Assembly (NCBI GenBank): GCA_965112735.1
Contig: OZ218954.1
Location: forward strand, 4,092,001 to 4,156,000
Reading direction: 5' to 3'
Source of the DNA: Phaeosaccion multiseriatum
Lineage: Eukaryota; Protista; Ochrophyta, other classes
DNA: 64,000 bases
In this document: positions 3,835 through 36,717 of the stretch, in pieces
Layout: every line of letters starts with the position of its first letter
Position numbering within the stretch: the first letter of the stretch is position 1
Translations under genes and position numbers: made by a program
Notes under the pieces: generated by a model
The model's input: only the letters and a program-made list of their open reading frames with translations
Told to the model about the DNA's origin: nothing
Databases searched by the model: none

Positions 3835-5500
3835 TCACCACCACTTTCCCTTTCCCTTGCCGCCCTTCTGTGAGTGACAAGCGACAAGAGCGGAGCGAAG
3901 AGAGGGAGGTGCGTGAGTGAAAAGTGGTGAGAGAGATACAGAGAGACGCATGGCAGGCACAACGTACCCTTCCTTTTCCCTTGCCGCCCTTCTGTGAGTG
4001 AAAGCAACAAGAGAGGGAGGTGTGTGAGTAAGACCTGTGAGAATATGACAGAGAGAGGATAGAAGGAAGAGGCGGAACAGACCTTTCTTTTGCGATGCTT
4101 CTTTCCCTTCTTGTTCTGATGATAAAGTGAGAGAGAGTGAAGGAGAAGTAGGAGGTGGGTGAGTGACAATCTAGACACAATCAAGAAAAGCGAGAGGATA
4201 GAAGGAGCGGAACACACCTTTCTCTTGCGATGCTTCTTTCCCTTGGACTTGTCCTTGGAAGAATCCTTGCTGTCCTTGGAGGAATCCTTGCTGTCCGAGA
4301 AATCCTTGCTGACAGATGCTACTGTCCACACAGGCTGAGGCGTGGGCTTTGGAGTGGTTGGGGGAGGGGAGGAAAAAGAGGGGGTTGTGGGGTGAGGGGA
4401 GGAGGAAGGAGCAAAGGTAGAGAGAGAGGCTGAGCAGGATACATGAGGAGGCTGGTCTTCTTCATTTGAAGCAGCACGAGGTGCCTGTGCCACGGGCAAA
4501 GCATGGAGTCTCTCGAGGCAGTGAATGCATACATCATACCTTTGCGGTCCACACAGGCGTGGGAGCGGGAGGGACTGGGGCTGGACAGGCGTAGACGTCA
4601 AGTCCGTGGTAGGTGCCGGGCGCACGGCAGCCACCAGGGGCTCCAACACAGCCGTCGGCGGAGTAGTCATCCTGACACTCGCCAGTGGTGTCGGTAGCAA
4701 AGTTGCACTCCGGACGGTGCGGGTTGAGGCCTCCCTCCCTGCAGCAGACGTAGCAGGAGGACATAGGGGCAGGGGTCGGAGCCACGGGAGGGTCCGTCCA
4801 GGTAGGCTTGGGCGTGGGAGGAGCCCTCCAGATAGGCGCAGGAGTGGGTACGTATGTGGGCGCCTTGGTGGGCTGTTGTCGGAGGAGCGAGAGCCGAAAG
4901 ATTGCAACAGATGCGTGAAGTGGCGCCGCGGGGAGGTGGAGTGGGAGGGGTGAGGAGAAAGTACAGGCCGGGCGAGGTTTAGCGGTAAGCACCAAGACGA
5001 GGTTTCCTTCATTGTAGTCTAGCGGGAATGCGACGAGCATCGGTGCCTCTGAGGAAGTAAATTCTGACCTTGTAGGTGGGTGCCGGAGTAGGGTGCATCG
5101 TCGGGGTGTACGGCGTGTTGTTGATGGGAGAGGGGCGGCCGGAGGGTGGCAAGAGATGCGAGGCACACGTAAAGTGCCGCACGAAGTGGAACGACGAGGG
5201 GAGGAGGAACAGGCAGAGGCAGAGGGGATCTTAAAAGCGGGGGCTTCTGGTCTTGCTTCTTTTACGGTAGCACAGGAAGCACATGGGCCTCTTGGACCAT
5301 TGCTGCCTTACCTTCATGGTAGGTGCGGGGGTAGTCCCCGTCCAGACAGGCGCGGGAGTGGGTCTAGACCAGTACCGGCGCCACGGTGACGACCTCAAAC
5401 TCCTGCGCTCAGGGTCGCGCTCACTCGGCTCGTCGTTGGCGATGGCCTGGTGCATGACCAAGAAGGCCAGCAGGGCGGTCACGAGGAAGGAGAGCCGCAT
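3835..5500 (-). CDS. Short paralogue of the repeat-protein gene: secreted protein with a Cys-rich module in place of the array
   Basis: Exon 5500-5312: MRLSFLVTALLAFLVMHQAIANDEPSERDPERRSLRSSPWRRYWSRPTPAPVWTGTTPAPTMK. Exon 4872-4540: PT-rich plus an 8-Cys segment SSCYVCCREG...YACP. Exon 4346-4218: SKDS block and KGKKHRKRK. Exon 4115-4083: NKKGKKHRKRK. Exon 3991-3968: KGGKGKGR. Exon 3867-3835: KGGKGKGKWW*. All phase-0 GT-AG. An alternative ATG lies at 5509. Confidence 0.8.
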
Positions 5501-9194: not shown

Positions 9195-9311
9195 CGGCAG
9201 CTGCTATGTGAGTATGCCTCTCACAGCCGAAGCAAGCGAAAGAATAAGAAGCACACACCAACCGCTTCTCCGCCCCAATTAACTCACCCGTCTTATTAGC
9301 TGGCTGGCTTG

Positions 9312-12927: not shown

Positions 12928-14181
12928 GATTCACACGTAGTCTGCCCTGGAGCTTAGTGTGAGCGACGTGTGCGGGGAAAGTGGAAGAGATCCGACGGAG
13001 GGATGAAAGTGGGAGGGGGGAAGCGAATCAGCACCAACCTCGATTCCCCTGCGATTCGACAAGGATAGAGGGTCCTCGCGGTCGTGCTACAGAGATAAAA
13101 AATAGAAGTACGAGATAGAATGCCAAGATGAACGGGAGCAGCGTATATTGCAGCGAGCTTCCCTGAACTCCCCCTCAGCAGGCGCAAAAACGCAGCGCCT
13201 GGCTGCCTGCAGGATAGACTTACCTTTGCCTGCTCCAAGGATCTCGGTCGTGCGGGTGAGAGACCTTGTGAGGGGGATAAAGCGCAATGGCAGCTCTGGG
13301 GGAGCAGAGCTCGTGTGTGTCGTTAATTTTGTAGTGGTGTTTTGCTCTTCCCCCCAACAGGCAAGAATTAGCGCGAACTGGTTGTCCAAACTTGCGTCGC
13401 CAGCCTGTATTCTCCTCCCCCCTATTTCCCTTATCATTCTTGGGGAAAAAATAGGCAAGTGAAAAGGCTATAAGAGCGGTATCGACCTGCACCTTACACA
13501 CCCAGTATACACTATCCTTGTCTAAGGTCTACAGCTCTTTGCGCCCAAAAAATGGCTCTTTTCTTCTGCTTGGTTTTGCGCGGTCATATGGGGTGGGAGG
13601 GGGGTGGACTTGGTGGGTGGGGGGTTGGGGGATGGAGACCAAGGGCAATGCAGTGAGAGAAGCACAGAGAGAGAGAGAGTGAAAGAGGGAGAGGGACAGA
13701 GAGTGAGAGGGAGATGGAGAGAGGGAGAAAAAGAGACGGTCTGACTGCGAAAAAGAGCAAACCGTAGAGGTGTATGGGGAGAGGAGGCTGTGAGTGGGAC
13801 ATACACCGCTTACCAACTCCTGCAGCCCTAGCCAGGGGGGGGGGCTTAGCCAGGCTCGTCGCGTAAAATTACCGGTACATTTTGTAACTGTTGCGTATGT
13901 TGCCCCCCAATTGCACACCGCAGACCCTCCGGAGGCCTGACGGTGTACGACGCGGTGGCCAAGGGCATGGAGGAGGTCAACCTCGGCAGCAGGACCATCA
14001 GCACCAAGCAGTGCCTTTCCTGGTTCAACTTCAGGTGGGTGGGATGGCAGTGAATGGAGGAGGCGGAGGAGGAGGATGGCAGTGGATGGGATGGAGCGGA
14101 TGGAGAAAGATGATGGCAGTGGATGGAGGTGGAGGATGGCATTGGACCATGAAGTGTGAGTGTGTGACTCTACACGCGTAC

Positions 14182-14219
14182 AAGGCCAGGAGGGCGGTGC
14201 CGAAGAAGGAGAAGCGCAT
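14182..14219 (-). pseudogene. Second copy of the decapitated family member (MRFSFFGTALLA)
   Basis: Duplicate of 3387-3424 within the segmental duplication, with the same truncation junction. Confidence 0.7.
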
Positions 14220-14633
14220 GTGATGTCGGGGGGTTGCAAGAATATAATACGCGCCGCGCAGCATCTCGAGCAGTTGGGGCTTTGGACTCACAGAATTGTT
14301 GACTTACTGGAACCTTTTTTCGATCGGAGCTGATTCCAAGGCGGCTCAAGAGTGGCTCAAACTAAGATTCACAAGCGGCTTAAACGGCTGGTCATTCGTG
14401 CCTCAAGTCTCACTCAACTGCGAAAGCACACTTTCATTTTTATAGAGAGTGATAAAGCTATAATAACAATGGTGGTAGGAGAGGGTCTTGTTGTCTCACG
14501 GGTCGTCCTCTGGAGCAAGGCAACACTTCTACATCAGAGGAATAGACACCAGCTGATGACATGGCCTTCCATTAATAGATCTTACGAGCAATTTAATCTG
14601 TCAATAAAGAGTTTTCGGGGCGACCTCACCACT

Positions 14634-17600
14634 TCACCACCATTTCCCCTTTCCCTTGCCGCCCTTCTGTGAGTGACAAGCGACAAAAGCGGAGCGAAGA
14701 GAGGGAGGTGCGTGAGTAAAAAGTGTGTGAGAGAGAGAGTTCCCCGCGGACAAGAGCGAACAGACCTTTCTTTTGCGATGCTTCTTTCCCTTCTTGTTCT
14801 GATGACAAAGTGAGAGAGATGAAGGAGAAGTAGGAGGTGGGTGAGTGACAAGCTAGGCACACAAGAAAAAACCGAGAGGATAGAAGGAAGAGGCGGAACA
14901 GACCTTTCTTTTGCGATGCTTCTTTCCCTTCTTGTTCTGATGACAAAGTGAGAGAGAGTGAAGGAGAAGTAGGAGGTGGGTGAGTGACAATCTAGACACA
15001 ATCAAGAAAAGCGAGAGGATAGAAGGAACACACCTTTCTTTTGCGATGCTTCTTTCCCTTCTTGTTCTGATGACAAAGTGAGAGAGAGTGAAAGAGAAGT
15101 AGGAGGTGGGTGAGTGACAATCTAGACACAATCAAGAAAAGCGAGAGGATAGAAGGAGCGGAACAGACCTTTCTCTTGCGATGCTTCTTTCCCTTGGACT
15201 TGTCCTTGGAAGAATCCTTACTGTCCTTGGAGGAATCCTTGCTGTCCGAGGAATCCTTGCTGACAGACGTAGGTGCCGCTGTCCACACAGGCTGAGGCGT
15301 GGGCTTTGGAGTGGTTGGGGGAGGGAGAGAGAGTGGGGGAGGGGAGGAAGAAGAGGGAAGGGCAAGTGGGGTGAGGGGAGGAGGAAGGAGCCGGAAAGGA
15401 CGGGAATGGCATGGAGGGAGCTTTCCCCCTCACGGGTGAGATTGCTTACCTTCATGGTGGGGGCGGGCGTAGGTGCCGCTGTCCAGACTGGCTTGGTCGT
15501 GGGAGCGGGGGTAGGAGCGTCCGTAGGAGCCCTCGTGGGCTGTGGGCGGGAAAGCGAGCACGGGAAGGAAGGACGGACATGAAGTGGAGCAAGGGGTAAG
15601 AGACGCGTGAGGCTTAGCGGGGAGCGTAAAGCTGAAACGGGCCGATCACATGAGGTCGACGGGCACAGCAGACTGCCCATGACTGCTGAGATGGCGTACC
15701 TTCATCGTCGGGGCGAACGTAGGTGCGGCTGTCCAGACTGGCTTGGTCGTAGGAGCGGGGGTAGGTGCATCCGTAGGAGCCCTCGTGGGCTGTGGAAGGA
15801 AGGACGGACATGAAATGGAGCAAGAGTTAGGGAAAGGCGACGCTTCGGGGGGGCGTAGAGCTGAAGCGGGCCGATCACATGAGGTCGACGGGTACAGCAG
15901 ACTGCCCATGACTGCTGAGATTGCTCACCTTCATTGTCGGGGCGGGGGTAGGTGCATCCGTAGGAGCCCTCGTGGGCTGTGGGTGGGGAAGCGAGCACGG
16001 GAAGGAAGGATCGAAATGGAGCAAGGGGTAAGAGACGCGTGAGGCTTAGCGGGGAGCGTAGAGCTGAAACGGGCCGATCCCATGAGGTCGACGGGCACAG
16101 CAGACTGCCCATGACTGCTGAGATGGCTCACCTTCATGGTGGGCGCGAACGTAGGTGCCGCTGTCCAGACGGGCTTGGTCGTAGGAGCGGGGGTAGGTGC
16201 ATCCGTGGGAGCCCTCGTGGGCTGTGGGTGGGGAAGCGAGCACGGGAAGGAAGGACGGACATGAAGTGGAGCAAGGGGTAAGAGACGCGTGAGGCTTAGC
16301 GGGGAGCGTAGAGCTGAAACGGGCCGATCACATGAGCTCGACGGGCACAGCAGACTGCCCATGCCTGCTGAGATGACTCACCTTCATCGTCGGGGCGGGG
16401 GTAGGTGCATCCGTAGGAGCCCTCGTGGGCTGTGGGGGGGGAAGCGAGCAAGGGAAGGAAGGACGGACATGAAGTGGAGCAAGGGGTAAGAGACGCATGA
16501 GTGAGGCTTAGCGGGGAGCGTAGAGCTGAAGCGGGCCGATCACATGAGGTCGACGGGCACGGCGCACTGCCCATGACTGCTGAGATGGCTTACCTTCATG
16601 GTGGGGGCGGGCGTAGGTGCGGCTGTCCAGACTGGCTTGGTCGTAGGAGCGGGGGTAGGAGCGTCCGTAGGAGCCCTCGTGGGCTGTTAGTGGAGGAGCG
16701 AGCACGTGAAGGAAGGGCGGACATGAGATGGAGCAAGGGGTAAGAGACGCGTGAGGCTTAGCGGGGAGCGTAGAGCTGAAACGGGCCGATCACATGAGCT
16801 CGACGGGCACGGCGCACTGCCCATGACTGCTGAGATGGCTCACCTTCATGGTGGGGGCGGGGGTAGGTGCATCCGTAGGAGTCCTCGTGGGCTGTGGGTG
16901 GGGAAGCGAGCAAGGCAAGGAAGGATCGAAATGAAATGGAGCAAGCGTGAAGGAAAGGCGAGGCTTCGGGGGGGCGTAGAGCTGAAACGGGCCGATCACA
17001 TGAGGTCGACGGGCACAGCAGACTGCCCATGACGACTGAGATTGCTCACCTTCATCGTCGGGGCGGGGGTAGGTGCGGCTGTCCAGACTGGCTTGGTCGT
17101 AGGCGCGGGGGTAGGAGCGTCCGTAGGAGCCCTCGTGGGCTGTGGGTGGAGGGGCGAGCAAGAGAAGGAAGGGCGGACATGAAATGGAGCAAGGGGTAAG
17201 AGACGCGTGAGGCTTAGCGGGGAGCGTAGAGCTCAAACGGGCCGATCACATGAGCTCGACGGGCACAGCAGACTGCCCATGACTGCTGCGTTTGCTCACC
17301 TTCATCGTCGGGGCGGGGGTAGGTGCATCCGTGGGAGCCCTCGTGGGCTGTGGGTGGGGAAGCGAGCAAGGGAAGGAAGGACGGACATGAAGTGGAGCAA
17401 GGGGTAAGAGGCGCGTGAGGCTTAGCGGGGAGCGTAGAGCTCAAACGGGCCGATCACATGAGCTCGACGGGCACAGCAGACTGCCCATGACTGCTGAGAT
17501 TGCTTACCTCCATCGTAGGGGCGGGGGTAGGTGCATCCGTAGGAGCCCTCGTGGGCTGTGGGTGGGGAAGCGAGCAAGGGAAGGAAGGGCGGACATGAAG

Positions 17601-20600
17601 TGGAGCAAGGGGTAAGAGGCGCGTGAGGCTTAGCGGGGAGCGTAGAGCTCAAACGGGCCGATCACATGAGCTCGACGGGCACAGCAGACTGCCCATGACT
17701 GCTGAGATTGCTTACCTCCATCGTAGGGGCGGGGGTAGGTGCATCCGTAGGAGCCCTCGTGGGCTGTGGGTGGGGAAGCGAGCAAGGGAAGGAAGGACGG
17801 ACATGAAATGGAGCAAGGGGTAAGAGACGCGTGAGTGAGGCTTAGCGGGGAGCGTAGAGCTCAAACGGGCCGATCACATGAGCTCGACGGGACACAGCAG
17901 ACTGCCCATGACTGCTGAGATGGCTCACCTTCATCGTCGGGGCGGGGGTAGGTGCATCCGTAGGAGCCCTCGTGGGCTGTGGGTGGGGAAGCGAGCAAGG
18001 GAAGGAAGGATGGACATGAAATGGAGCAAGGGGTAAGAGACGCTGAGGCTTAGCGGGAGCGTAGAGCTGAAACGGGCCGATCACATGAGCTCGACGGGCA
18101 CGGCGCACTGCCCATGACTACTGAGATTCCTTCCCTTCATCGTGGGGGCGGGCGTAGGTGCGGCTGTCCAGACTGGCTTGGTCGTAGGCGCGGGGGTAGG
18201 AGCGTCCGTAGGAGCCCTCGTGGGCTGTGAGTGGAGGAGCGAGCAAGGGAAGGAAGGGCGGACATGAAATGGAGCAAGGGGTAAGAGACGCGTGAGGCTT
18301 AGCGGGGAGCGTAGAGCTGAAACGGGCCGATCACATGAGCTCGACGGGCACAGCCTACGGCTCACCTTCATCGTCGGGGCGGGGGTAGGTGCATCCGTAG
18401 GAGCCCTCGTGGGCTGTGGGTGGAGGAGCGAGCAAGGGAAGGAAGGACGGACATGAAGTGGAGCAAGGGGTAAGAGACGCATGAGGCTTAGCGGGGAGCG
18501 TAGAGCTCAAACGGGCCGATCACATGAGCTCGACGGGCACAGCAGACTTCCCCTGACTGCTGAGATTGCTCACCTTCATCGTCGGGGCGGGAGTAGGTGC
18601 ATCCGTTGGAGCCCTCGTGGGCTGAGAGGGGGGAAGCGAGCACGGGAAGGAAGGACGGACATGAAATGGAGCAAGGGGTAAGAGACGCGTGAGTGAGGCT
18701 TAGCGGGGAGCGTAGAGCTGAAACGGGCCGATCACATGAGGTCGACGGGCACGGCGCACTGCCCATGACTGCTGAGATTGCTTACCTTCATCGTCGGGGC
18801 GGGCGTAGGTGCGGCTGTCCAGACTGGCTTGGTCGTGGGAGCGGGGGTAGGAGCGTCCGTGGGAGCCCTCGTGGGCTGTGGGTGGAGGAGCGAGCACGGG
18901 AAGGAAGGGCGGACATGAAGTGGAGCAAGGGTTAAGAGACGCGTGAGGCTTAGCGGGGAGCGTAGAGCTCAAACGGGACGATCACATGAGGTCGACGGGC
19001 ACAGCAGACTGCCCATGACTGCTGAGATTACTCACCTTCATCGTCGGGGCGGGGGTAGGTGCATCCGTAGGAGCCCTCGTGGGCTGTGGGTGGGGAAGCG
19101 AGCAAGGCAAGGAAGGACGGACATGAAATGGAGCAAGGGGAAAGAGACGCGTGAGGCTTAGCGGGGAGCGTAGAGCTGAAACGGGCCGATCACATGAGCT
19201 CGACGGGCACAGCAGACAGCCCATGACTGCTGAGAGTACTCACCTTCATCGTCGGGGCGGGGGTAGGTGCATCCGTAGGAGCCCTCGTGGGCTTGGGGGG
19301 GGAAGCGAGCAAGGGAGGGAAGGACGGACATGAAGAGGAGCAAGGGGTAAGAGACGCGTGAGTGAGGCTTAGCGGGGAGCGTAGAGCTCAAACGGGCCGA
19401 TCACATGCGCTCGACGGGCACAGCAGACTGCCCATGACTGCTGAGATGGCTCACCTTCATCGTCGGGGCGGGGGTAGGTGCATCCGTGGGAGCCCTCGTG
19501 GGCTGTGGGTGGGGAAGCGAGCAAGGGAAGGAGGGACGGAAGGGGTAGGAGGCGCGTGAGGCTTAGCGGGGAGCGTAGAGCTCAAGCGGGCCGATCACAT
19601 GAGGTCGCCGGGCACAGCAGACTGCCCATGACTGCTGAGATGGCTCACCTTCATGGTGGGGGCGGGGGTAGGTGCATCCGTAGGAGCCCTCGTGGGCTGT
19701 GGGTGGGGAAGCAAGCAAGGGAAGGAAGGACGGACATGAAGTGGAGCAAGGGGTAAGAGACGCGTGAGGCTTAGCGGGGAGCGTAGAGCTGAAACGGGCC
19801 GATCACATGAGCTCGACGGGCACGGCGCACTGCCCATGACTGCTGAGATGGCGTACCTTCATGGTGGGGGCGGGCGTAGGTGCGGCTGTCCAGACTGGCT
19901 CGGTCGTAGGCGCGGGGGTAGGAGCGTCCGTAGGAGCCCTCGTGGGCTGTGAGTGGAGGAGCGAGCAAGGGAAGGAAGGGCGGACATGAAATGGAGCAAG
20001 GGGTAAGAGACGCGTGAGGCTTAGCGGGGAGCGTAGAGCTGAAACGGGCCGATCACATGAGCTCGACGGGCACAGCAGACGGCCCATGACTGCTGAGTTT
20101 GCTAACCTTCATCGTCGGGGCGGGGGTAGGTGCATCCGTAGGAGCCCTCGTGGGCTGTTGGTGGTGAGGCGAGCAAGGGAAGGAAGTCAGACACGAAGTG
20201 GGGCAAGTGGTAAGAGACGCGTGAGGCTTAGCGAGGAGCGTAGAGCTCAAACGGGCCGATCACATGAGCTCGACGGGCACCGCAGACTGCCCATGACTGC
20301 TGAGATTACTCACCTTCATCGTCGGGGCGGGGGTAGGTGCATCCGTAGGAGCCCTCGTGGGCTTGGGGTGGGGAAGCGAGCAAGGGAAGGAAGGACGGAC
20401 ATGAAGTGGAGCAAGGGGTAAGAGACGCGTGAGTGAGGCTTAGCGGGGAGCGTAGAGCTCAAACGGGCCGATCACATGAGCTCGACGGGCACAGCAGACA
20501 GCCCATGACTGCTGAGATTACTCACCTTCATCGTCGGGGCGGGGGTAGGTGCATCCGTAGGAGCCCTCGTGGGCTGTGGGTGGGGAAGCGAGCAAGGGAA

Positions 20601-23600
20601 GGAAGGACGGACATGAAATGGAGCAAGGGGTAAGAGACGCGTGAGGCTTAGCTGGGAGCGTAGAGCTGAAACGGGCCGATCACATGAGCTCGACGGGCAC
20701 GGCGCACTGCCCATGACTGCTGAGATTGCTTACCTTCATCGTCGGGGCGGGCGTAGGTGCGGCTGTCCAGACTGGCTTGGTCGTGGGAGCGGGGGTAGGA
20801 GCGTCCGTAGGAGCCCTCGTGGCCTGTGGGTGGAGGAGCGAGCAAGGGAAGGAAGGGCGGACATGAAGTGGAGCAAGGGTTAAGAGACGCGTGAGGCTTA
20901 GCGGGGAGCGTAGAGCTCAAACGGGCCGATCACATGAGCTCGACGGGCACAGCAGACTGCCCATGACTGCTGAGATTGCTCACCTTCATTGTCGGGGCGG
21001 GTGTAGGTGCATCCGTAGGAGCCCTCGTGGGCTGTGGGTGGGGAAGCGAGCAAGGGAAGGAAGGACGGACATGAAGTGGAGCAAGGGGTAAGAGACGCGT
21101 GAGGCTTAGCGGGGAGCGTAGAGCTGAAACGGGCCGATCACATGAGCTCGACGGGCACAGCAGACGGCCCATGACTGCTGAGTTTGCTAACCTTCATCGT
21201 CGGGGCGGGGGTAGGTGCATCCGTAGGAGCCCTCGTGGGCTGTTGGTGGTGAGGCGAGCAAGGGAAGGAAGTCAGACACGAAGTGGGGCAAGTGGTAAGA
21301 GACGCGTGAGGCTTAGCGAGGAGCGTAGAGCTCAAACGGGCCGATCACATGAGCTCGACGGGCACCGCAGACCGCCCATGACTGCTGAGATTACTCACCT
21401 TCATCGTCGGGGCGGGGGTAGGTGCATCCGTAGGAGCCCTCGTGGGCTTGGGGTGGGGAAGCGAGCAAGGGAAGGAAGGACGGACATGAAGTGGAGCAAG
21501 GGGTAAGAGACGCGTGAGTGAGGCTTAGCGGGGAGCGTAGAGCTCAAACGGGCCGATCACATGAGCTCGACGGGCACAGCAGACAGCCCATGACTGCTGA
21601 GATTACTCACCTTCATCGTCGGGGCGGGGGTAGGTGCATCCGTAGGAGCCCTCGTGGGCTTGGGGTGGGGAAGCGAGCAAGGGAAGGAAGGACGGACATG
21701 AAATGGAGCAAGGGGTAAGAGACGCGTGAGGCTTAGCTGGGAGCGTAGAGCTGAAACGGGCCGATCACATGAGCTCGACGGGCACGGCGCACTGCCCATG
21801 ACTGCTGAGATTGCTTACCTTCATCGTCGGGGCGGGCGTAGGTGCGGCTGTCCAGACTGGCTTGGTCGTGGGAGCGGGGGTAGGAGCGTCCGTAGGAGCC
21901 CTCGTGGGCTGTGGGTGGAGGAGCGAGCAAGGGAAGGAAGGGCGGACATGAAGTGGAGCAAGGGTTAAGAGACGCGTGAGGCTTAGCGGGGAGCGTAGAG
22001 CTCAAACGGGCCGATCACATGAGCTCGACGGGCACAGCAGACTGCCCATGACTGCTGAGATGGCTCACCTTCATTGTCGGGGCGGGTGTAGGTGCATCCG
22101 TAGGAGCCCTCGTGGGCTGTGGGTGGGGAAGCGAGCAAGGGAAGGAAGGACGGACATGAAGTGGAGCAAGGGGTAAGAGACGCGTGAGGCTTAGCGGGGA
22201 GCGTAGAGCTCAAACGGGCCGATCACATGAGCTCGACGGGCACAGCAGACTGCCCATGACTGCTGAGATTGCTCACCTTCATTGTCGGGGCGGGGGTAGG
22301 TGCATCCGTAGGAGCCCTCGTGGGCTGTGGGTGGGGAAGCGAGCAAGGGAAGGAAGGACGGACATGAAGTGGAGCAAGGGGTAAGAGACGCGTGAGTGAG
22401 GCTTAGCGGGGAGCGTAGAGCTGAAACGGGCCGATCACATGAGCTCGACGGGACACAGCAGACTGCCCATGACTGCTGAGATTACTCACCTTCATCGTCG
22501 GGGCGGGGGTAGGTGCATCCGTAGGAGCCCTCGTGGGCTGTGGGTGGGGAAGCGAGCAAGGGAAGGAAGGACGGAAGGGGTAGGAGACGCGTGAGGCTTA
22601 GCGGGGAGCGTAGAGCTCAAACGGGCCGATCACATGAGCTCGACGGGCACAGCAGACTGCCCATGACTGCTGAGATGGCTCACCTTCATAGTCGGGGCGG
22701 GCGTAGGTGCGGCGGTCCAGACTGGCTTGGTCGTAGGAGCGGGGGTAGGAGCGTCCGTGGGAGCCCTCGTGGGCTGTGAGTGCAGGAGCGAGCACGGGAA
22801 GGAAGGACGGACATGAAGTGGAGCAAGGGGTAAGAGACGCGTGAGGCTTAGCGGGGAGCGTAGAGCTGAAACGGGCCGATCACATGAGCTCGACGGGACA
22901 CAGCAGACTGCCCATGACTGCTGAGATTACTCACCTTCATCGTCGGGGCGGGGGTAGGTGCATCCGTAGGAGCCCTCGTGGGCTGTGGGTGGAGGAGCGA
23001 GCAAGGGAAGGAAGGGCGGACATGAAGTGGAGCAAGGGGTAAGAGACGCGTGAGGCTTAGCGGGGAGCGTAGAGGTCAAACGGGCCGATCACATGAGCTC
23101 GACGGGCACAGCAGACTGCCCATGACTGCTGAGATTGCTCACCTTCATTGTCGGGGCGGGGGTAGGTGCATCCGTAGGAGCCCTCGTGGGCTGTGGGTGG
23201 GGAAGCGAGCAAGGGAAGGAAGGACGGAAGGGGTAGGAGACGCTTGAGGCTTAGCGGGGAGCGTAGAGCTCAAACGGGCCGATCACATGAGCTCGACGGG
23301 CACAGCAGACTGCCCATGACTGCTGAGATGGCTCACCTTCATAGTCGGGGCGGGCGTAGGTGCGGCGGTCCAGACTGGCTTGGTCGTAGGAGCGGGGGTA
23401 GGAGCGTCCGTGGGAGCCCTCGTGGGCTGTGGGTGGAGGAGCGAGCACGGGAAGGAAGGACGGACATGAAGTGGAGCAAGGGGTAAGAGACGCGTGAGGC
23501 TTAGCGGGGAACGTAGAGCAGAAACGGGCCGATCACATGAGCTCGACGGGCACAGCAGACTGCCCATGACGGCTGAGATTGCTCACCTTCATTGTCGGGG

Positions 23601-26600
23601 CGGGGGTAGGTGCATCCGTGGGAGCCCTCGTGTGCTGTGGGTGGGGAAGCGAGCAAGGGAAGGAAGGACGGACATGAAGTGGAGCAAGGGGTAAGAGACG
23701 CGTGAGTGAGGCTTAGCGGGGAGCGTAGAGCTGAAACGGGCCGATCACATGAGCTCGACGGGACACAGCAGACTGCCCATGACTGCTGAGATTACTCACC
23801 TTCATCGTCGGGGCGGGGGTAGGAGCATCCGTAGGAGCCCTCGTGGGCTGTGGGTGGGGAAGCGAGCAAGGGAAGGAGGGACGGAAGGGGTAGGAGGCGC
23901 GTGAGGCTTAGCGGGGAGCGTAGAGCTCAAGCGGGCCGATCACATGAGGTCGACGGGCACAGCAGACTGCCCATGACTGCTGAGATGGCTTACCTTCATC
24001 GTCGGGGCGGGGGTAGGTGCATCCGTAGGAGCCCTCGTGGGCTTGGGGTGGGGAAGCGAGCAAGGGAAGGAAGGACGGACATGAAATGGAGCAAGGGGTA
24101 AGAGACGCGTGAGGCTTAGCTGGGAGCGTAGAGCTGAAACGGGCCGATCACATGAGCTCGACGGGCACGGCGCACTGCCCATGACTGCTGAGATTGCTTA
24201 CCTTCATCGTGGGGGCGGGCGTAGGTGCGGCTGTCCAGACTGGCTTGGTCGTAGGCGCGGGGGTAGGAGCGTCCGTAGGAGCCCTCGTGGGCTGTGAGTG
24301 GAGGAGCGAGCACGGGAAGGAAGGACGGATGAAGTGGAGCAAGGGGTAAGAGACGCGTGAAGCTTAGCGGGGAGCGTAGAGCTGAAACGGGCCGATCACA
24401 TGAGCTCGACGGGCACAGCAGACTGCCCATGACGGCTAAGGTTACTCGCCTTCATCGTCGGGGCGGGGGTAGGTGCGTCCGTAGGAGCCCTCGTGGGCTG
24501 TTGGTGGTGAGGCGAGCAAGGGAAGAAAGTCAGACACGAAGTGGGGCAAGTGGTAAGAGACGCGTGAGGCTTAGCGGGGAGCGTAGAGCTCAAACGGGCC
24601 GATCACATGAGCTCGACGGGCACCGCAGACTGCCCATGACTGCTGAGATTACTCACCTTCATCGTCGGGGCGGGGGTAGGTGCATCCGTAGGAGCCCTCG
24701 TGGGCTTGGGGTGGGGAAGCGAGCAAGGGAAGGAAGGACGGACATGAAGTGGAGCAAGGGGTAAGAGACGCGTGAGTGAGGCTTAGCGGGGAGCGTAGAG
24801 CTGAAACGGGCCGATCACATGAGCTCGACGGGCACGGCGCACTGCCCATGACTGCTGAGATTACTCACCTTCATCGTCGGGGCGGGGGTAGGTGCATCCG
24901 TAGGAGCCCTCGTGGGCTTGGGGTGGGGAAGCGAGCAAGGGAAGGAAGGACGGACATGAAATGGAGCAAGGGGTAAGAGACGCGTGAGGCTTAGCTGGGA
25001 GCGTAGAGCTGAAACGGGCCGATCACATGAGCTCGACGGGCACGGCGCACTGCCCATGACTGCTGAGATTGCTTACCTTCATCGTCGGGGCGGGCGTAGG
25101 TGCGGCTGTCCAGACTGGCTTGGTCGTGGGAGCGGGGGTAGGAGCGTCCGTAGGAGCCCTCGTGGGCTGTGGGTGGAGGAGCGAGCAAGGGAAGGAAGGA
25201 CGGACATGAAGTGGAGCAAGGGGTAAGAGACGCGTGAGGCTTAGCGGGGAGCGTAGAGCTCAAACGGGCCGATCACATGAGCTCGACCGGCACCGCAGAC
25301 TGCCCATGACTGCTGAGATTGCTCACCTTCATTGTCGGGGCGGGGGTAGGTGCATCCGTAGGAGCCCTCGTGGGCTGTGGGTGGGGAAGCGAGCAAGGGA
25401 AGGAAGGACGGACATGAAGTGGAGCAAGGGGTAAGAGACGCGTGAGTGAGGCTTAGCGGGGAGCGTAGAGCTGAAACGGGCCGATCACATGAGCTCGACG
25501 GGACACAGCAGACTGCCCATGACGGCTAAGGTTACTCGCCTTCATCGTCGGGGCGGGGGTAGGTGCGTCCGTAGGAGCCCTCGTGGGCTGTTGGTGGTGA
25601 GGCGAGCAAGGGAAGAAAGTCAGACACGAAGTGGGGCAAGTGGTAAGAGACGCGTGAGGCTTAGCGGGGAGCGTAGAGCTCAAACGGGCCGATCACATGA
25701 GCTCGACGGGCACCGCAGACTGCCCATGACTGCTGAGATTACTCACCTTCATCGTCGGGGCGGGCGTAGGTGCGGCTGTCCAGACTGGCTTGGTCGTAGG
25801 CGCGGGGGTAGGAGCGTCCGTAGGAGCCCTCGTGGGCTGTGGGTGGAGGAGCGAGCAAGGGAAGGAAGGGCGGACATGAAGTGGAGCAAGGGTTAAGAGA
25901 CGCGTGAGGCTTAGCGGGGAGCGTAGAGCTCAAACGGGCCGATCACATGAGCTCGACGGGCACAGCAGACTGCCCATGACTGCTGAGATTGCTCACCTTC
26001 ATTGTCGGGGCGGGTGTAGGTGCATCCGTAGGAGCCCTCGTGGGCTGTGGGTGGGGAAGCGAGCAAGGGAAGGAAGGACGGACATGAAGTGGAGCAAGGG
26101 GTAAGAGACGCGTGATGCTTAGCGGGGAGCGTAGAGCTGAAACGGGCCGATCACATGAGCTCGACGGGCACAGCAGACTGCCCATGACTGCTGAGATGGC
26201 TCACCTTCATCGTCGGGGCGGGGGTAGGTGCATCCGTAGGAGCCCTCGTGGGCTGTGGGTGGGGAAGCGAGCAAGGGAAGGAAGGGCGGACATGAAGTGG
26301 AGCAAGGGGTAAGAGACGCGTGAGGCTTAGCGGGGAGCGTAGAGGTCAAACGGGCCGATCACATGAGCTCGACGGGCACAGCAGACTGCCCATGACGGCT
26401 AAGGTTACTCGCCTTCATCGTCGGGGCGGGGGTAGGTGCGTCCGTAGGAGCCCTCGTGGGCTGTTGGTGGTGAGGCGAGCAAGGGAAGAAAGTCAGACAC
26501 GAAGTGGGGCAAGTGGTAAGAGACGCGTGAGGCTTAGCGGGGAGCGTAGAGCTCAAACGGGCCGATCACATGAGCTCGACGGGCACCGCAGACTGCCCAT

Positions 26601-29600
26601 GACTGCTGAGATTACTCACCTTCATCGTCGGGGCGGGGGTAGGTGCATCCGTAGGAGCCCTCGTGGGCTGTGGGTGGAGGAGCGAGCAAGGGAAGGAAGG
26701 GCGGACATGAAGTGGAGCAAGGGGTAAGAGACGCGTGAGTGAAGCTTAGCGGGGAGCGTAGAGCTGAAACGGGCCGATCACATGAGCTCGACGGCACACA
26801 GCAGACTGCCCATGACTGCTGAGATTACTCACCTTCATCGTCGGGGCGGGGGTAGGTGCATCCGTAGGAGCCCTCGTGGGCTGTGGGTGGGGAAGCGAGC
26901 AAGGGAAGGAAGGATCGAAATGGAACAAGGGGTAAGAGACGCGTGAGGCTTAGCGGGGAGCGTAGAGCTGAAACGGGCCGATCACATGAGCTCGACGGGC
27001 ACGGCGCACTGCCCATGACTGCTGAGATTGCTTACCTTCATCGTCGGGGCGGGCGTAGGTGCGGCTGTCCAGACTGGCTTGGTCGTAGGCGCGGGGGTAG
27101 GAGCGTCCGTAGGAGCCCTCGTGGGCTGTGGGTGGAGGAGCGAGCAAGGGAAGGAAGGACGGACATGAAGTGGAGCAAGGGGTAAGAGACGCGTGAGGCT
27201 TAGCGGGGAGCGTAGAGCTCAAACGGGCCGATCACATGAGCTCGACCGGCACCGCAGACTGCCCATGACTGCTGAGATTGCTCACCTTCATTGTCGGGGC
27301 GGGGGTAGGTGCATCCGTAGGAGCCCTCGTGGGCTGTGGGTGGGGAAGCGAGCAAGGGAAGGAAGGACGGACATGAAGTGGAGCAAGGGGTAAGAGACGC
27401 GTGAGTGAGGCTTAGCGGGGAGCGTAGAGCTGAAACGGGCCGATCACATGAGCTCGACGGGACACAGCAGACTGCCCATGACTGCTGAGATTACTCACCT
27501 TCATCGTCGGGGCGGGGGTAGGTGCATCCGTAGGAGCCCTCGTGGGCTGTGGGTGGGGAAGCGAGCAAGGGAAGGAAGGGCGGACATGAAGTGGAGCAAG
27601 GGGTAAGAGACGCGTGAGGCTTAGCGGGGAGCGTAGAGGTCAAACGGGCCGATCACATGAGCTCGACGGGCACAGCAGACTGCCCATGACTGCTGAGATT
27701 ACTCACCTTCATCGTCGGGGCGGGGGTAGGTGCATCCGTAGGAGCCCTCGTGGGCTGTGGGTGGGGAAGCGAGCAAGGGAAGGAAGGGCGGACATGAAGT
27801 GGAGCAAGGGGTAAGAGACGCGTGAGGCTTAGCGGGGAGCGTAGAGGTCAAACGGGCCGATCACATGAGCTCGACGGGCACAGCAGACTGCCCATGACTG
27901 CTGAGATTACTCACCTTCATCGTCGGGGCGGGGGTAGGTGCATCCGTAGGAGCCCTCGTGGGCTGTGGGTGGGGAAGCGAGCAAGGGAAGGAAGGGCGGA
28001 CATGAAGTGGAGCAAGGGGTAAGAGACGCGTGAGGCTTAGCGGGGAGCGTAGAGGTCAAACGGGCCGATCACATGAGCTCGACGGGCACAGCAGACTGCC
28101 CATGACTGCTGAGATTACTCACCTTCATCGTCGGGGCGGGGGTAGGTGCATCCGTAGGAGCCCTCGTGGGCTGTGGGTGGGGAAGCGAGCAAGGGAAGGA
28201 AGGACGGACATGAAGTCGAGCAAGGGGTAAGAGACGCGTGAGGCTTAGCGGGGAGCGTAGAGCTGAAACGGGCCGATCACATGAGGTCGACGGGCACGGC
28301 GCACTGCCCATGACTGCTGAGATTGCTTACCTTCATGGTGGGGGCGGGCGTAGGTGCGGCTGTCCAGACTGGCTTGGTCGTAGGCGCGGGGGTAGGAGCG
28401 TCCGTAGGAGCCCTCGTGGGCTGTGGGTGGAGGAGCGAGCAAGGGAAGGAAGGGCGGACATGCAGTGGAGCAAGGGGTAGGAGACGCGTGAGGCTTAGCG
28501 GGGAGCGTAGAGCTCAAACAGGCCGATCGAATGAGCTCGACGGGCACCGCAGACTGCCCCTGACGGTTGAGATTGCTCACCTTCATCGTCGGGGCGGGGG
28601 TAGGTGCATCCGTAGGAGCCCTCGTGGGCTGTGGGTGGGGAAGCGAGCAAGGGAAGGAAGGACGGACATGAAATGGAGCAAGAGGTAAGAGACGCTGAGG
28701 CTTAGCGGGGAGCGTAGAGCTGAAACGGGCCGATCACATGAGGTCGACGGGCACGGCGCACTGCCCATGACTGCTGAGATTGCTTACCTTCATGGTGGGG
28801 GCGGGCGTAGGTGCCGCTGTCCAGACTGGCTTGGTCGTAGGAGCGGGGGTAGGAGCGTCCGTAGGAGCCCTCGTGGGCTGTGAGTGGAGGAGCGAGCACG
28901 GGAAGGAAGGACGGACATGATATGGAGCAAGGGGTAAGAGACGCGTGAGGCTTAGCGGGGAGCGTAGAGCTGAAACGGGCCGATCACATGAGCTCGACGG
29001 GCACAGCAGACTGCCCATGCCTGCTGAGATGACTCACCTTCATCGTCGGGGCGGGGGTAGGTGCATCCGTAGGAGCCCTCGTGGGCTGAGGGGGGGGAAG
29101 CGAGCAAGGGAAGGAAGGACGGACATGAGGAAGGAAGGATCGAAATGGAACAAGGGGTAAGAGACGCGTGAGTGAGGCTTAGCGGGGAGCGTAGAGCTGA
29201 AACGAGCCGATCACATGAGCTCGACGGGCACAGCAGACTTCCCCTGACTGCTGAGATTGCTTACCTTCATCGTGGGGGCGGGCGTAGGTGCGGCTGTCCA
29301 GACTGGCTTGGTCGTAGGCGCGGGGGTAGGAACGTCCGTGGGAGCCCTCGTGGGCTGTGAGTGGAGGAGCGAGCACGGGAAGGAAGGACGGACATGAAAT
29401 GGAGCAAGGGGTAAGAGACGCGTGAGGCTTAGCGGGGAGCGTAGAGCTGAAACGGGCCGATCACATGAGCTCGACGGGCACAGCAGACTGCCCATGCCTG
29501 CTGAGATGACTCACCTTCATGGTGGGGGCGGGGGTAGGTGCATCCGTAGGAGCCCTCGTGGGCTGTGGGTGGGGAAGCGAGCAAGGGAAGGAAGGACGGA

Positions 29601-32149
29601 CATGAAGTGGAGCAAGGGGTAAGAGACGCGCGAGGCTTAGCGGGGAGCGTAGAGCGCAAAAGGGCCGATCACATGAGCTCGACGGGCACCGCAGACTGCC
29701 CATGCCTGCTGAGATTACTCACCTTCATCGTCGGGGCGGGGGTAGGTGCATCCGTAGGAGCCCTCGTGGGCTGAGGGGGGGGAAGCGAGCACGGGAAGGA
29801 AGGACGGACATGAAGTGGAGCAAGGGGTAAGAGACGCGTGAGTGAGGCTTAGCGGGGAGCGTAGAGCTGAAACGGGCCGATCACATGAGGTCGACGGGCA
29901 CGGCGCACTGCCTATGACTGCTGAGATTGCTTACCTTCATCGTCGGGGCGGGCGTAGGTGCGGCTGTCCAGACTGGCTTGGTCGTAGGCGCGGGGGTAGG
30001 TGCATCCGTAGGAGCCCTCGTGGGCTGTGGGTGGGGAAGCGAGCAAGGGAAGGAAGGACGGACATGAAATGGAGCAAGGGGTAAGAGACGCGTGAGGCTT
30101 AGCGGGGAGCGTAGAGCTGAAACGGGCCGATCACATGAGGTCGACGGGCACAGCAGACGGCCCATGACTGCTGAGTTTGCTTACCTTCATCGTCGGGGCG
30201 GGGGTAGGTGCATCCGTAGGAGCCCTCGTGGGCTGTGGGTGGGGAAGCGAGCAAGGGAAGGAAGGACGGACATGAAGTGGAGCAAGGGGTAAGAGACGCG
30301 TGAGTGAGGCTTAGCGGGGAGCGTAGAGCTGAAACGGGCCGATCACATGAGCTCGACGGGACACAGCAGACTGCCCATGACTGCTGAGATTACTCACCTT
30401 CATTGTCGGGGCGGGGGTAGGAGCATCCGTAGGAGCCCTCGTGGGCTGTGGGTGGGGAAGCGAGCACGGGAAGGAAGGGCGGACATGAAGTGGAGCAAGG
30501 GGTAAGAGACGCGTGAGGCTTAGCTGGGAGCGTAGAGCTGAAACGGGACGATCACATGAGGTCGCCGGGCACAGCAGACTGCCCATGACTGCTGAGATGG
30601 CTCACCTTCATGGTCGGGGCGGGGGTAGGTGCATCCGTAGGAGCCCTCGTGGGCTGTGGGTGGGGAAGCGAGCAAGGGAAGGAAGGATGGACATGAAATG
30701 GAGCAAGGGGTAAGAGACGCGTGATGCTTAGCGGGGAGCGTAGAGCTGAAACGGGCCGATCACATGAGCTCGACGGGCACAGCAGACTGCCCATGACTGC
30801 TGAGATGGCTCACCTTCATCGTCGGGGCGGGGGTAGGTGCATCCGTAGGAGCCCTCGTGGGCTGTGGGTGGGGAAGCGAGCACGGGAAGGAAGGATCGAA
30901 ATGGAACAAGGGGTAAGAGACGCGTGAGGCTTAGCGGGGAGCGTAGAGCTGAAACGGGCCGATCACATGAGCTCGACGGGCACGGCGCACTGCCCATGAC
31001 TGCTGAGATGGCGTACCTTCATGGTGGGGGCGGGCGTAGGTGCGGCTGTCCAGACTGGCTTGGTCGTGGGAGCGGGGGTAGGAGCGTCCGTAGGAGCCCT
31101 CGTGGGCTGTGAGTGGAGGAGCGAGCAAGGGAAGGAAGGGCGGACATGATATGGAGCAAGGGGTAAGAGACGCGTGAGGCTTAGCGGGGAGCGTAGAGCT
31201 CAAACGGGCCGATCACATGAGCTCGACCGGCACCGCAGACTGCCCATGACGGCTGAGATTGCTCACCTTCATCGTCGGGGCGGGGGTAGGTGCATCCGTA
31301 GGAGCCCTCGTGGGCTGTGGGTGGGGAAGCGAGCAAGGGAAGGAAGGACGGACATGAAGTGGAGCAAGGGGTAAGAGACGCGTGAGTGAGGCTTAGCGGG
31401 GAGCGTAGAGCTGAAACGGGCCGATCACATGAGCTCGACGGGACACAGCAGACTGCCCATGACTGCTGAGATTACTCACCTTCATTGTCGGGGCGGGGGT
31501 AGGAGCATCCGTAGGAGCCCTCGTGGGCTGTGGGTGGGGAAGCGAGCAAGGGAAGGAAGGACGGACATGAAGTGGAGCAAGGGGTAAGAGACGCGTGAGT
31601 GAGGCTTAGCGGGGAGCGTAGAGCTGAAACGGGCCGATCACATGAGCTCGACGGGCACAGCAGACTGCCTATGACTGCTGAGATTGCCCACCTTCATGGT
31701 CGGGGCGGGGGTCGGAGCGTCCGTCCAAGTAGGCTGGGGCGTAGGCACGGGCGGGGCCGTCCACGTTGGCGCGGGCGTGGGTGCGTACGTGGGAGGCTCC
31801 GTGGGCTTGTGGACGGCGGAGCGAGGACGGGAAGGCACACGCAGTTGGCGCGCGAATTGGAGCGAGGTGAGGAGGAAGGCGGGGGCTACGTGAGGAGAGC
31901 AATATTGGCTTCACATATCACGAAAAGCACGGTGCCTCTCAAGGCAGGCTCTCTTACCTTCGTGGTGGGCACCGGGGTAGCCCCTGTCCAGACAGGCGCG
32001 GGAGTGGGGCTGGACCAGTACCGACTCCACCGGGATTTTAGCATCCTGGCTTCAGGAACATCACGGTCCGTCCTCTCGTCGTTCTCGGAGGTGGCCCGGC
32101 TGACGGCGAGGAAGGCCAGGAGGGCGGTGCCGAAGAAGGAGACACGCAT
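14634..32149 (-). CDS. Giant secreted Pro/Thr-rich (mucin-like) repeat protein with SKDS block and polybasic K/G tail; ~81 exons, ~1,670 aa if all exons are included
   Basis: Exon 1, 32149-31958: MRVSFFGTALLAFLAVSRATSENDERTDRDVPEARMLKSRWSRYWSSPTPAPVWTGATPVPTTK then GTAAG. Exon 2, 31805-31692: PTEPPTYAPTPAPTW...PTMK. About 74 repeat exons lie between ~31527 and 15450. Exon 15303-15169 encodes PTPQPVW...SKDSSDSKDSSKDSKDSSKDKSKGKKHRKRK. Three 33-nt exons encode NKKGKKHRKRK (15066-15034, 14936-14904, 14798-14766). The last exon, 14666-14634, encodes KGGKGKGKWW*. All junctions are phase 0 with AG/GT ends (a few exceptions are listed in findings). Confidence 0.85.
15450..31691 (-). repeat. Tandem array of ~74 exon+intron modules (units mostly ~208 or ~250 bp)
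   Basis: Minus-strand unit: ...cccacag|CCCACGAGGGCTCCTACGGATGCACCTACCCCCGCCCCGACGATGAAG|gtgag...(~160-nt intron). About 53 short (48-nt, 16-aa) and 21 long (90-nt, 30-aa) exons by manual count. Confidence 0.95.
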
Positions 32150-32304
32150 GGTGCTCACGATGTTGGTCACGTAAGCTGTAGTCTTTGCTTTCGTCCAGTG
32201 TTGGTTTGTTTGTGAGCAGGCATGTGCCCTCTATGCTCCTGCTCATCAGCCGAAACATTTATATTCGTTTCTGGACAGCAAGGCAACAATAACGCGCCAA
32301 ATTC

Positions 32305-32325
32305 TCTTGGGCAGTTGGGGCTTCG
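32305..32325 (-). promoter_or_regulatory. Conserved upstream motif of the secreted-protein family (CGAAGCCCCAACTGCCCAAGA on -)
   Basis: The same motif or close variants occur at ~34259-34280, ~5611-5632, ~3479-3492 and ~14270-14283, always 50-180 bp upstream of a family ATG. Confidence 0.5.
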
Positions 32326-33023
32326 AGAAAAATCGCAAAAATCACAGGACTAAACAACCCCCGGGGGGGGAACTACCCTCCTCGACAAACGCGCTGCCTG
32401 GGCTACTTCCTGCTTCCTGCTTTCTGGCTGCGGCCTGGTCGACGTGCCGCCTCTCGTTCGACCGCCCCTCCTCTGGTGGAGGGCAATCTCGAACACAGGT
32501 CATGGTATTTTCGCTCACGGGGCAGCCTTGCTTCCTGAGGCATCCGAATTTGGACTGACGCGGGTCGGGGGGATAGAGGGGCGATAGTACAGGTGAAGAG
32601 CAGTGGTGACCGCCCACCCGATAGCAGCCCCCCCGAGCATGATAGTTGCAAGCCACAGGCCAGGCGATACGCGCCAGCATCCTTTCTCCTTCGCGTTCAC
32701 TGAGCCTTTTCGGGTGCGAGTGAGTAGAGAGCAGCCCAGCCCTGCCTGCCCACTCGCCTTCTTAGCAATCACTCTTTGAGAGCATCTGAGCAATCCTTCC
32801 TAGCACCACTTCCGACTGTTCTGACTCTGGGCTCTCCCCCGGGCGGGTTGCTTCAAGAGTCTGCGCCTTTCGAACCACGACTTTTCTCTGCCCGCCCTCT
32901 CTAGTCCATAGATTGTCCGTCACGATTGTTAGTGCCATACGACGGGAGGGTTCGGATACATTTCGTGCGTCCCTGGGAAGCCGCGGCATCTGCCTTATCT
33001 TTTTGGCATCCGTGGTGCTGCTG

Positions 33024-33254
33024 AGCTTTCGGCCCTAAGAGGTTACAGTGTGCGCCGGTCATAATCAGTAATCAGGCCGGCTGGCGCCGGTCATAATCAG
33101 TAATCAGACCCGGCTGGCGCCGGCATAATCAGTAATCAGGCCCGGCTGGCGCCATAATCAGTAATCAGGCCGGCTGGCGCCGGCAGTACAGTAATCAGGC
33201 CGGCTGCGCCGGCCGTAATCAGTAATCTGATAACCTCTTCCAGGGCCGAGAGCT
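33024..33254. mobile_element. MITE-like element (~230 bp): imperfect ~23-bp TIRs around a ~30-bp minisatellite
   Basis: AGCTTTCGGCCCTAAGAGGTTA at the left end versus TAACCTCTTCCAGGGCCGAGAGCT at the right end (inverted). Inside are ~6 copies of GCGCCGG(T)CATAATCAGTAATCAGGCCGGCTG. Confidence 0.6.
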
Positions 33255-33495: not shown

Positions 33496-33840
33496 TCAAT
33501 ACTTGCCCTTGCCCTTGTTGCCCCTCCCCTTCCCCTTGCCCCTCCCCTTGCCCCTCCCCTTCCCCTTGCCCTTCCCCTTGTTGCCCCTCCCCTTCCCCTT
33601 ACCCTTGTTGCCCCTCCCCTTACCCTTGCCCTTCCCCTTGTTGCCCCTCCCCTTGCCCTTGCCCTTCCCCCTACCCCTCTGCGAGCGAGAGACAAGCGAC
33701 AGACAAGCGAGGGGGGGAGAGGAGAGAGATCGAAGAAGGGTCATGAGTAGAGCCAACACGTTGTAGTGGAAGTACAGGGGAACAAAACGTCAGTAGCTCA
33801 CCTTTCCCCTCTTCCCCTTCGAGCTGTCGGAGCTGGAAGA

Positions 33841-33878
<38 letters not shown>

Positions 33879-34101
33879 CCGAGGAGCAGTCGTAGCTGTC
33901 CCCCTTCGAGGAGTCGTGGCTCACGTTCTTTCCGGGCTTGGTCGGGGGAGGGGAAGTCCAGGGGGCGGGCGCCACAGGGACCGACCCCGTGAGCTCGCGT
34001 TTCTTCAACTCGTCGCTGGCGGGCTCCCCGATCTTGGCGGTGGCCTGGTTGGTGATGGCGAGGAAGGCCAGGAGGGCGGTGCCGAAGAAGGAGAAACGCA
34101 T
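33496..34101 (-). CDS. Small secreted Ser-rich / Lys-Gly-Arg-rich protein (160 aa), third family member
   Basis: Exon 1, 34101-33802: MRFSFFGTALLAFLAITNQATAKIGEPASDELKKRELTGSVPVAPAPWTSPPP...[26 protein letters not shown] then GTGAG. Exon 2, 33678-33496, after ctcgcag: RGRGKGKGKGRGNKGKG...KGKY*. Same signal peptide and upstream sequence as the giant gene. Confidence 0.8.

Positions 34102-36686: not shown

Positions 36687-36717
<31 letters not shown>

Follow-up and report, generated by a model that had tools for sequence, protein, structure and literature searches.

The Flag gene of Nephila and the MaSp2 gene of Argiope are built from exon and intron iterated together, and their introns are near-identical within a gene, which has been ascribed to concerted evolution (PMC3563967). 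In the ROCO-LRR and NB-ARC-TPR genes of the brown alga Ectocarpus, a repeat takes up a single phase-0 exon whose length is constant (72 nt in the case of LRR), the number of exons shifts by shuffling or duplication, and inactivated exon copies are found in introns (PMC3341825; PMC11378527). This article concerns a locus of the ochrophyte Phaeosaccion multiseriatum in a stretch of 64,000 nt (positions 4,092,001 to 4,156,000 of contig OZ218954.1, assembly GCA_965112735.1; hereafter the window, to which all coordinates refer), where a 16-kb tandem array has the appearance of a satellite. We consider it likely that the array belongs to one spliced gene on the minus strand, gene B, that encodes a secreted precursor of 1,668 amino acids (aa) and whose central 16 kb has grown by cassette duplication. 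A preliminary description of the locus cited the one-repeat-per-exon precedent of Ectocarpus accurately (PMC3341825), but because Flag and MaSp2 were already known as homogenised exon-plus-intron genes, the uniqueness that it implied was overstated (PMC3563967).

The model of gene B runs on the minus strand from 32149 to 14634 and comprises 81 exons with a coding sequence of 5,007 nt, which opens with an ATG at 32149, closes with a stop codon ending at 14634 and has no internal stops; the span first proposed, 14634-32149, corresponds exactly to these two ends. All 80 introns are in phase 0, and their splice sites are GT-AG in 76, GC-AG in three and GG-AG in one. The amplified introns make up 71% of the span of the gene. 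Since the coding strand is the minus strand, the plus strand of the array is strongly G-rich (GC skew +0.31 to +0.33). From start to stop codon, the parts of the model are the following.

31958..32149, minus strand: exon 1, 192 nt, with the start codon, the predicted, hydrophobic signal peptide MRVSFFGTALLAFLAVSRA, an acidic stretch to RML (an RXL motif) and the first PT/W-rich residues.
31806..31957, minus strand: intron 1, 152 nt, GT..AG, phase 0, outside the repeat.
31692..31805, minus strand: exon 2, 114 nt, PTEPPTYAPTPAPTWTAPPVPTPQPTWTDAPTPAPTMK.
15450..31527, minus strand: cassette array, 74 exon-plus-intron cassettes with 53 exons of 48 nt and 21 of 90 nt, and introns mostly of 160 nt.
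15169..15303, minus strand: tail exon 1, 135 nt, PTPQPVWTAAPTSVSKDSSDSKDSSKDSKDSSKDKSKGKKHRKRK.
14766..15066, minus strand: tail mini-array of three identical 33-nt exons (15066..15034, 14936..14904 and 14798..14766).
14634..14666, minus strand: last exon, KGGKGKGKWW and the stop codon.

The 3' end of exon 2 and the intron that follows it already belong to the cassette family. Tandem Repeats Finder (TRF) delimits the 16-kb array at about 15.8-31.7 kb, with periods of 208, 250, 416 and 458 nt. Each unit reads CAG, exon, GTRAG... on the minus strand; a strict pattern recovers 64 units, and a fuzzy search with the exon head recovers exactly 74 (31527-15450), against an initial estimate of about 74. 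The short cassette exons (S, 48 nt) encode the peptide PTRAPTDAPTPAPTMK, identical in 49 of 53, the long ones (L, 90 nt) encode PTRAPTDAPTPAPTTKPVWTAAPTPAPTMK, identical in 16 of 21, and the array as a whole would yield peptides of the type APTDAPTPAPTMK. Exons of these two sizes, introns of about 160 nt and phase 0 throughout had been described from the outset, as had a repeat of up to about 1,480 aa, which amounts to 1,478 aa in the model. Introns are 160 nt long in 38 of 73 cases and otherwise fall into 11 classes between 139 and 179 nt that fit indels of +4/+5, -1 and -14 to -21 nt; the statement that indels are confined to introns and frameshifts absent from exons thus holds, with 12 length classes for introns and no exon indel. 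The last 42 nt of the cassette introns are 83% pyrimidine. Mean pairwise divergence between introns is 7.1%, and many pairs are identical, leaving 60 distinct sequences among the 73.

An AG acceptor precedes all 74 cassette exons. The donors are GT in 70 cassettes, GC in three (those starting at 26460, 25587 and 24497) and a broken GG in one, with the hexamers GTGAGC, GTGAGT or GTAAGC in 65, GTACGC or GTTAGC in five, GCGAGT in three and GGAAGG in one. The original claim of an AG acceptor and a GT donor in each unit therefore stands for the acceptors and needs amending for these four donors, the last of which belongs to a single L exon.

18135..18224, minus strand: L cassette exon with the GG donor; retention of its intron leads to a stop, and skipping of the exon keeps the frame.

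The array has the properties of tandem symmetric exons, being made of equal-length, multiple-of-three exons in one phase with usable splice sites (73 of 74 donors). Owing to the symmetry of the exons, the frame would survive if a splice site were lost, as has happened in the GG-donor cassette, or if any set of exons were skipped, and the cassette architecture may be considered robust and potentially tunable. The idea that the introns bear an RNA, in the manner of a small nucleolar RNA host gene, was rejected, as there is no Rfam match anywhere in the window, cassette introns included, and the cassette folds no better than shuffled sequence (z = 0.55).

Variation among the cassettes is distributed as expected of coding sequence. 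Nucleotide diversity at the first, second and third codon positions is 0.007, 0.002 and 0.071 in S exons and 0.012, 0.009 and 0.122 in L exons, and averages 0.071 in introns. In the predicted frame, the ratio of non-synonymous to synonymous diversity (piN/piS) is 0.051 (S) and 0.070 (L). Of four out-of-frame controls, three have ratios of 4.3 to 15.5, and one (S exons, frame +2) has no computable ratio, its piS being zero. Exon differences had been called mostly synonymous, which these ratios of 0.05-0.07 uphold, with the correction that eight non-synonymous variants exist among the cassettes, all of them rare. The comparison of exons with introns that had been proposed as a check gave 5 variable sites of 32 at positions 1 and 2 and 80 of 151 in introns (p = 1.4e-4), and no difference between position 3 and introns (p = 0.6). 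The contrast is sharper for common variants, which occur at none of 92 sites at positions 1 and 2, at 14 of 46 sites at position 3 (p = 4.6e-8) and at 38 of 151 intron sites (p = 2e-9 against positions 1 and 2). Exon indels, of which about six classes would be expected at the intron rate, are absent (Poisson p ~0.002). Which cassette variants spread was clearly decided by selection.

The reading of the array through its introns is closed. An in-frame stop is present in 70 of 73 introns, retention would shift the frame in 58 of 73, and the longest unspliced open reading frame (ORF) in the array is 182 aa. Unspliced translation was rejected on the strength of this short ORF and of unit lengths of 208 and 250 nt, which break the frame; coding on the opposite strand or in another frame was rejected as piN/piS exceeds 4 in the computable control frames. 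Because purifying selection is frame-specific, exons are free of indels, AG acceptors and 73 of 74 donors are kept, unspliced frames are closed, and start and stop match, the sequence supports an assignment of the array as a coding, splice-dependent part of one gene.

The same data bear on the possibility that the array is a satellite of recent expansion that arose from a coding cassette and no longer functions, a dying gene whose coding look is an undecayed relic, which we hold to be very unlikely. Introns have diverged by 7% and accumulated many indels, yet 4.4 kb of exon sequence contain neither frameshift nor stop; the gene has kept its start, predicted signal peptide, stop and tail undamaged, and the cassette logic is reused in the tail. 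The broken donor and the eight rare amino-acid changes would suit such a relic, as would three results given below, namely a non-significant test on rare variants, the many further copies that seem to exist elsewhere and the lack of a homologue in the databases searched.

The history of the array can be followed in its internal duplications. Self-comparison of the array by chunked blastn reveals the most similar pair of blocks:

19906..22299, minus strand: block duplication, a 1,085-bp block of five cassettes, 99% identical over at least 1.2 kb; TRF period 458.

Further multi-unit blocks have 95-97.6% identity at offsets of 1.3 to 6.3 kb. The order of S and L exons along the array is irregular, neighbouring introns are no more alike than distant ones, and the closest relatives are often four or five units apart. 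Such multi-unit duplications imply repeated in-register unequal exchange, and the five-cassette block shows a recent one, in keeping with the preliminary proposal that length changes through unequal crossover. A smaller counterpart lies in the tail, where the three 33-nt exons, each encoding NKKGKKHRKRK, and introns of about 97-105 nt form a repeat (TRF period 130, 3.3 copies); this 130-bp cassette is present three times in gene B and once in its paralogue C, and the mini-array is a product of the same process as the main array. The tail had been described as exons shared with a short paralogue, which is so, and to this must be added that it has an array of its own.

Copy number was further considered with reads of four runs from one sample (X1-X4), which were aligned to positions 31470-33040 of the window. 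The cassette is covered 200-500 times as deeply as the flanking, single-copy DNA taken together. Contigs of these reads over 31470-31681 and 32112-32199 contain a cassette variant (AAG then GCAGCC), junctions of cassettes with unrelated DNA, and a second copy of exon 1 and its 5' untranslated region (three mismatches) joined to intron sequence of the type found in a further gene, D (see below), all absent from the window. The excess depth and the off-window variants point to extra copies, be it at other places in the genome, on a second haplotype or in an array that has been under-assembled. That the length or arrangement of the array is itself an artefact, an over- or mis-assembled repeat, appears extremely improbable to us. 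It is true that the repeats are 93% alike over 16 kb, that the reads are short contigs of the same sample and thus not independent, and that the depth ratio differs from 74; however, the 73 introns comprise 60 distinct sequences, S and L exons are irregularly ordered, the duplicated blocks are nested with graded identities of 95-99%, and read depth indicates more copies, not fewer. The excess depth and the distinct introns together speak against an array inflated by the assembler.

A number of observations weigh against the single-gene model and are gathered here. Depth in X1-X4 is even over intron 1 and 0.9 kb of upstream DNA, with no splice joints, from which it follows that these runs, the only ones found for the locus, behave as DNA. 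The spliced junction of ...ATGAAG with CCCACGAGG... has no match in metagenome contigs, nor has a degenerate exon pattern. In the protein collections searched, neither the family nor the repeat has a homologue. Of the donors, one is broken and three read GC. Among rare variants, those confined to one or two cassettes, the shortage at positions 1 and 2 is not significant (8 of 92, against 8 of 46 at position 3; p = 0.16), so that present-day constraint is not proven. Finally, read depth and the off-window variants indicate that there is more to the array than the assembly contains. With regard to the homologue searches, neither exon 1 of paralogue A nor the eight-cysteine exon of paralogue C has a homologue among 5.8 billion clusters; phmmer with the L exon against 1.84 billion representatives returned only a bacterial PT-linker protein, which is irrelevant; Pfam gave nothing meaningful and no family on exon 1; and an Atlas search yielded only mucin-like look-alikes with scores of at most 0.68.

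It is at this point that a different use of the array has to be considered, in which expression of the gene goes with skipping of most cassettes. Exon 2 would then in effect join the tail exon or just a few cassettes, and the array would amount largely to a giant intron or reservoir with a coding signature inherited from a few amplified ancestors. Any subset of the phase-0 exons, or none of them, would leave the frame open, the case of paralogue C demonstrates the viability of a protein that lacks the array, constraint on rare and recent variants is non-significant, and the runs found for the locus are DNA-like. Yet non-synonymous variants became common at 0 of 92 sites when synonymous and intronic ones did so, 74 acceptors and 73 donors have been kept without a single exon indel, and short introns of about 160 nt with strong pyrimidine tracts favour local, intron-by-intron splicing. 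We judge wholesale skipping to be distinctly unlikely.

In the single-gene model, the central 16 kb would have been built as a symmetric phase-0 mini-exon and its spliceosomal intron of about 160 nt were repeatedly duplicated in tandem, one or several units at a time. Unequal crossing-over and gene conversion would keep exons and introns alike, and selection on the encoded peptide would pick which cassette variants spread. Removal of 80 introns would give a messenger RNA for the 1,668-aa precursor. Its predicted parts are a signal peptide, a short propeptide of acidic character that closes with RXL, a Pro/Thr/Ala stalk of about 1,480 aa, a Ser/Asp/Lys segment and a strongly polycationic tail of Lys, Arg and His with WW at its end. 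The cationic tail could then bind an anionic matrix, either an acidic polysaccharide or a mineral phase, and the length of the stalk would be set mainly by the germ-line number of cassettes and altered through unequal exchange.

The features of the conceptual protein accord with this layout. Its order is signal peptide, RXL propeptide, a 1,478-aa stalk of PTRAPTDAPTPAPTMK type, Ser/Lys/Asp segment and polybasic tail. By hydropathy only, the signal peptide has a core of about 2.0 on the Kyte-Doolittle scale over residues 4-16, followed by a predicted cleavage site between SRA and TS. The RXL motif is RML in protein B (residues 35-37), RSL in C and REL in A, and lies in all three 12-17 residues past the predicted cleavage site. 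Pro, Ala, Ser and Thr (PAST) make up 71.5% of the stalk, with 269 AP, 100 TP and 96 PA dipeptides, and the stalk is presumably O-glycosylated, extended and disordered. The last 100 residues carry a net charge of +36, and the tail has 17 KXXK motifs. The C-terminus, ...KGKKHRKRKKGGKGKGKWW, lacks a hydrophobic tail and hence a signal for a glycosylphosphatidylinositol (GPI) anchor. What the sequence shows is the anatomy of the gene, the frame-specific constraint, the need for splicing, the recent block duplication and the kinship of the paralogues; transcription, faithful splicing, secretion, glycosylation and an anchoring role we infer, and the most likely role would be that of an extracellular or cell-covering spacer or scaffold, its cationic tail anchored to an anionic matrix.

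A more far-reaching reading makes the array a plastic length ruler, in which regulated or stochastic skipping of cassettes, together with germ-line copy change, would produce from one gene a ladder of stalk lengths that spaces a cell-covering or biomineral scaffold anchored by the silaffin-like polycationic tail; the symmetry of all 74 cassettes and their interchangeable splice sites would permit this, but we regard it as unlikely. Were it true, the genome might use cassette amplification generally for tunable extracellular proteins, of which the tail mini-array is a hint. For the single-gene model itself, should transcripts bear it out, gene B would be among the longest and most uniform exon-plus-intron cassette arrays in a single gene, with 80 phase-0 introns. 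It would be a case in which intron number has risen through tandem duplication and not through insertion, and one in which concerted evolution acts jointly on introns and exons with selection filtering the exons only. Protein B would be a candidate constituent of the cell covering, from a lineage of which few members have been sampled, and the cassette count an easily scored marker of strain variation. For annotators, the locus is a warning that what looks like a satellite may be a gene, one liable to be masked or broken by standard pipelines.

Gene B belongs to a tandem family in the window (A, B and C), all on the minus strand; its two paralogues are as follows.

3835..5500, minus strand: paralogue C, 246 aa, with a signal-peptide exon and tail like those of gene B and, at the position of the array, an eight-cysteine exon (4872..4540).
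33496..34101, minus strand: paralogue A, 160 aa in two exons, with the same predicted signal peptide as its relatives, then REL, a block of poly-Ser and a polybasic tail of (GKGKGRGN)n.

That a signal-peptide exon brackets the array, as first described, is corroborated by paralogue C, with which gene B has exon 1 in common (63% protein identity, E 1e-24). Exon 2, over its first 36 residues, is 71% identical to the start of the eight-cysteine exon of C (E 2e-11), which belongs to no Pfam family (4540-4872), and the tails of B and C have 87-91% nt identity, introns included. Intron 1 of B barely aligns to its 439-nt counterpart in C, and the flanking exons are conserved. Within this intron of C, at 5069-5122 (minus strand), is a cassette-like 54-nt in-frame segment, NNTPYTPTMHPTPAPTYK, with a GT donor and no AG acceptor upstream, which may be a dead cassette exon. 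Paralogue A has a run of more than 20 Ser/Asp and a tail with a 33-nt periodicity.

Just downstream of B and C, at 14182-14220 and 3387-3425 (minus strand), there is in each case a 39-nt signal-peptide exon, MRFSFFGTALLAL, followed by GT and 95% identical to the start of exon 1 of B. These exons probably begin another duplicated secreted-protein gene (D/D') in a segmental duplication that relates 1-4412 to 9158-15391. Between A and B, about 0.9 kb upstream of the start codon of B, a 32-nt unit is repeated 5.7 times (33052-33227; GCGCCGGC...AATCAGTAATCAGGCCGGCTG). Elsewhere in the window, a 231-bp unit at 7139-7996 is present in 3.7 copies of 97% identity and has been described as hairpins with TGACGTCA boxes; a pentatricopeptide (PPR)-repeat ORF lies at 36190-36975 (minus strand), its best database relative being 31% identical; and 42800-51000 (plus strand) contains a series of large low-complexity coiled-coil ORFs with a KIF21A-like match. 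The PPR ORF and other ORFs point only weakly to diatoms or haptophytes, at identities of no more than 31%. The lineage appears to be poorly represented in public protein collections.

In relation to described systems, gene B resembles Flag and MaSp2, in that a repetitive secreted structural protein is encoded by exon and intron repeated jointly and the introns are near-identical within one gene (7.1% mean divergence). The spider genes have about a dozen large exons, in contrast to 74 mini-exons of 48 or 90 nt, and their host is an arthropod, whereas that of gene B is a protist or alga. Gene B is unrelated to these genes in sequence and lacks the spidroin terminal domains; the likeness is one of architecture only. 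The Ectocarpus genes encode folded, intracellular receptors with diversifying repeats, whereas the repeat of gene B is a homogenised, low-complexity, secreted Pro/Thr stalk, and in gene B, unlike the Ectocarpus genes, the introns have been amplified and homogenised along with the exons. The cassette-like segment within intron 1 of paralogue C, if it is a dead exon, would recall the inactivated intronic exons of Ectocarpus ROCO. In titin, the proline-rich, disordered PEVK repeats of about 28 aa each occupy one symmetric exon, and their inclusion sets the length of the extensible segment. Titin is a cytoskeletal muscle protein in which length tuning by alternative splicing has been demonstrated, and its introns are no homogenised satellite. 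The human LPA KIV-2 repeat is another analogue.

At the protein level, two classes invite comparison. The mucin-like PTS and arabinogalactan-protein (AGP) backbones are usually encoded by a single exon, as opposed to the 74 cassettes of gene B. Arabinogalactan proteins are recognised by a signal peptide, more than 50% Pro, Ala, Ser and Thr, and AP/PA/TP/SP glycomodules (PMC8658186). With its PAST of 71.5%, protein B falls within this composition and has a Lys-rich subdomain in addition; it is unlike a classical AGP in having no GPI-anchor signal, a supporting feature of the class, and a polybasic C-terminus ending in WW. Diatom biosilica-associated proteins have a signal peptide followed by a short region to RXL (PMC5525289), and a silaffin-like screen uses thresholds of at least 18% Ser and at least 10% Lys (PMC3478156). 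Proteins A, B and C resemble silaffins and cingulins in the predicted signal peptide with RXL, the Ser/Lys-rich segment, the KXXK clusters and the polycationic end, a resemblance only, without sequence homology. Paralogue A, with 18.8% Ser and 21.0% Lys, would be retained by that screen; protein B lies below its Ser threshold, with 12.4% Ser and 38.2% Lys in the post-array tail and 1.1% Ser in the whole protein. To our knowledge, known silaffins and cingulins have no PT stalk of 1,480 aa. Gene B thus joins the known homogenised exon-intron cassette genes as a case from a microbial eukaryote, beyond the animal and brown-alga examples, and stands out among them by the number (74), small size and uniformity of its cassettes, by its orphan protein and by its host.

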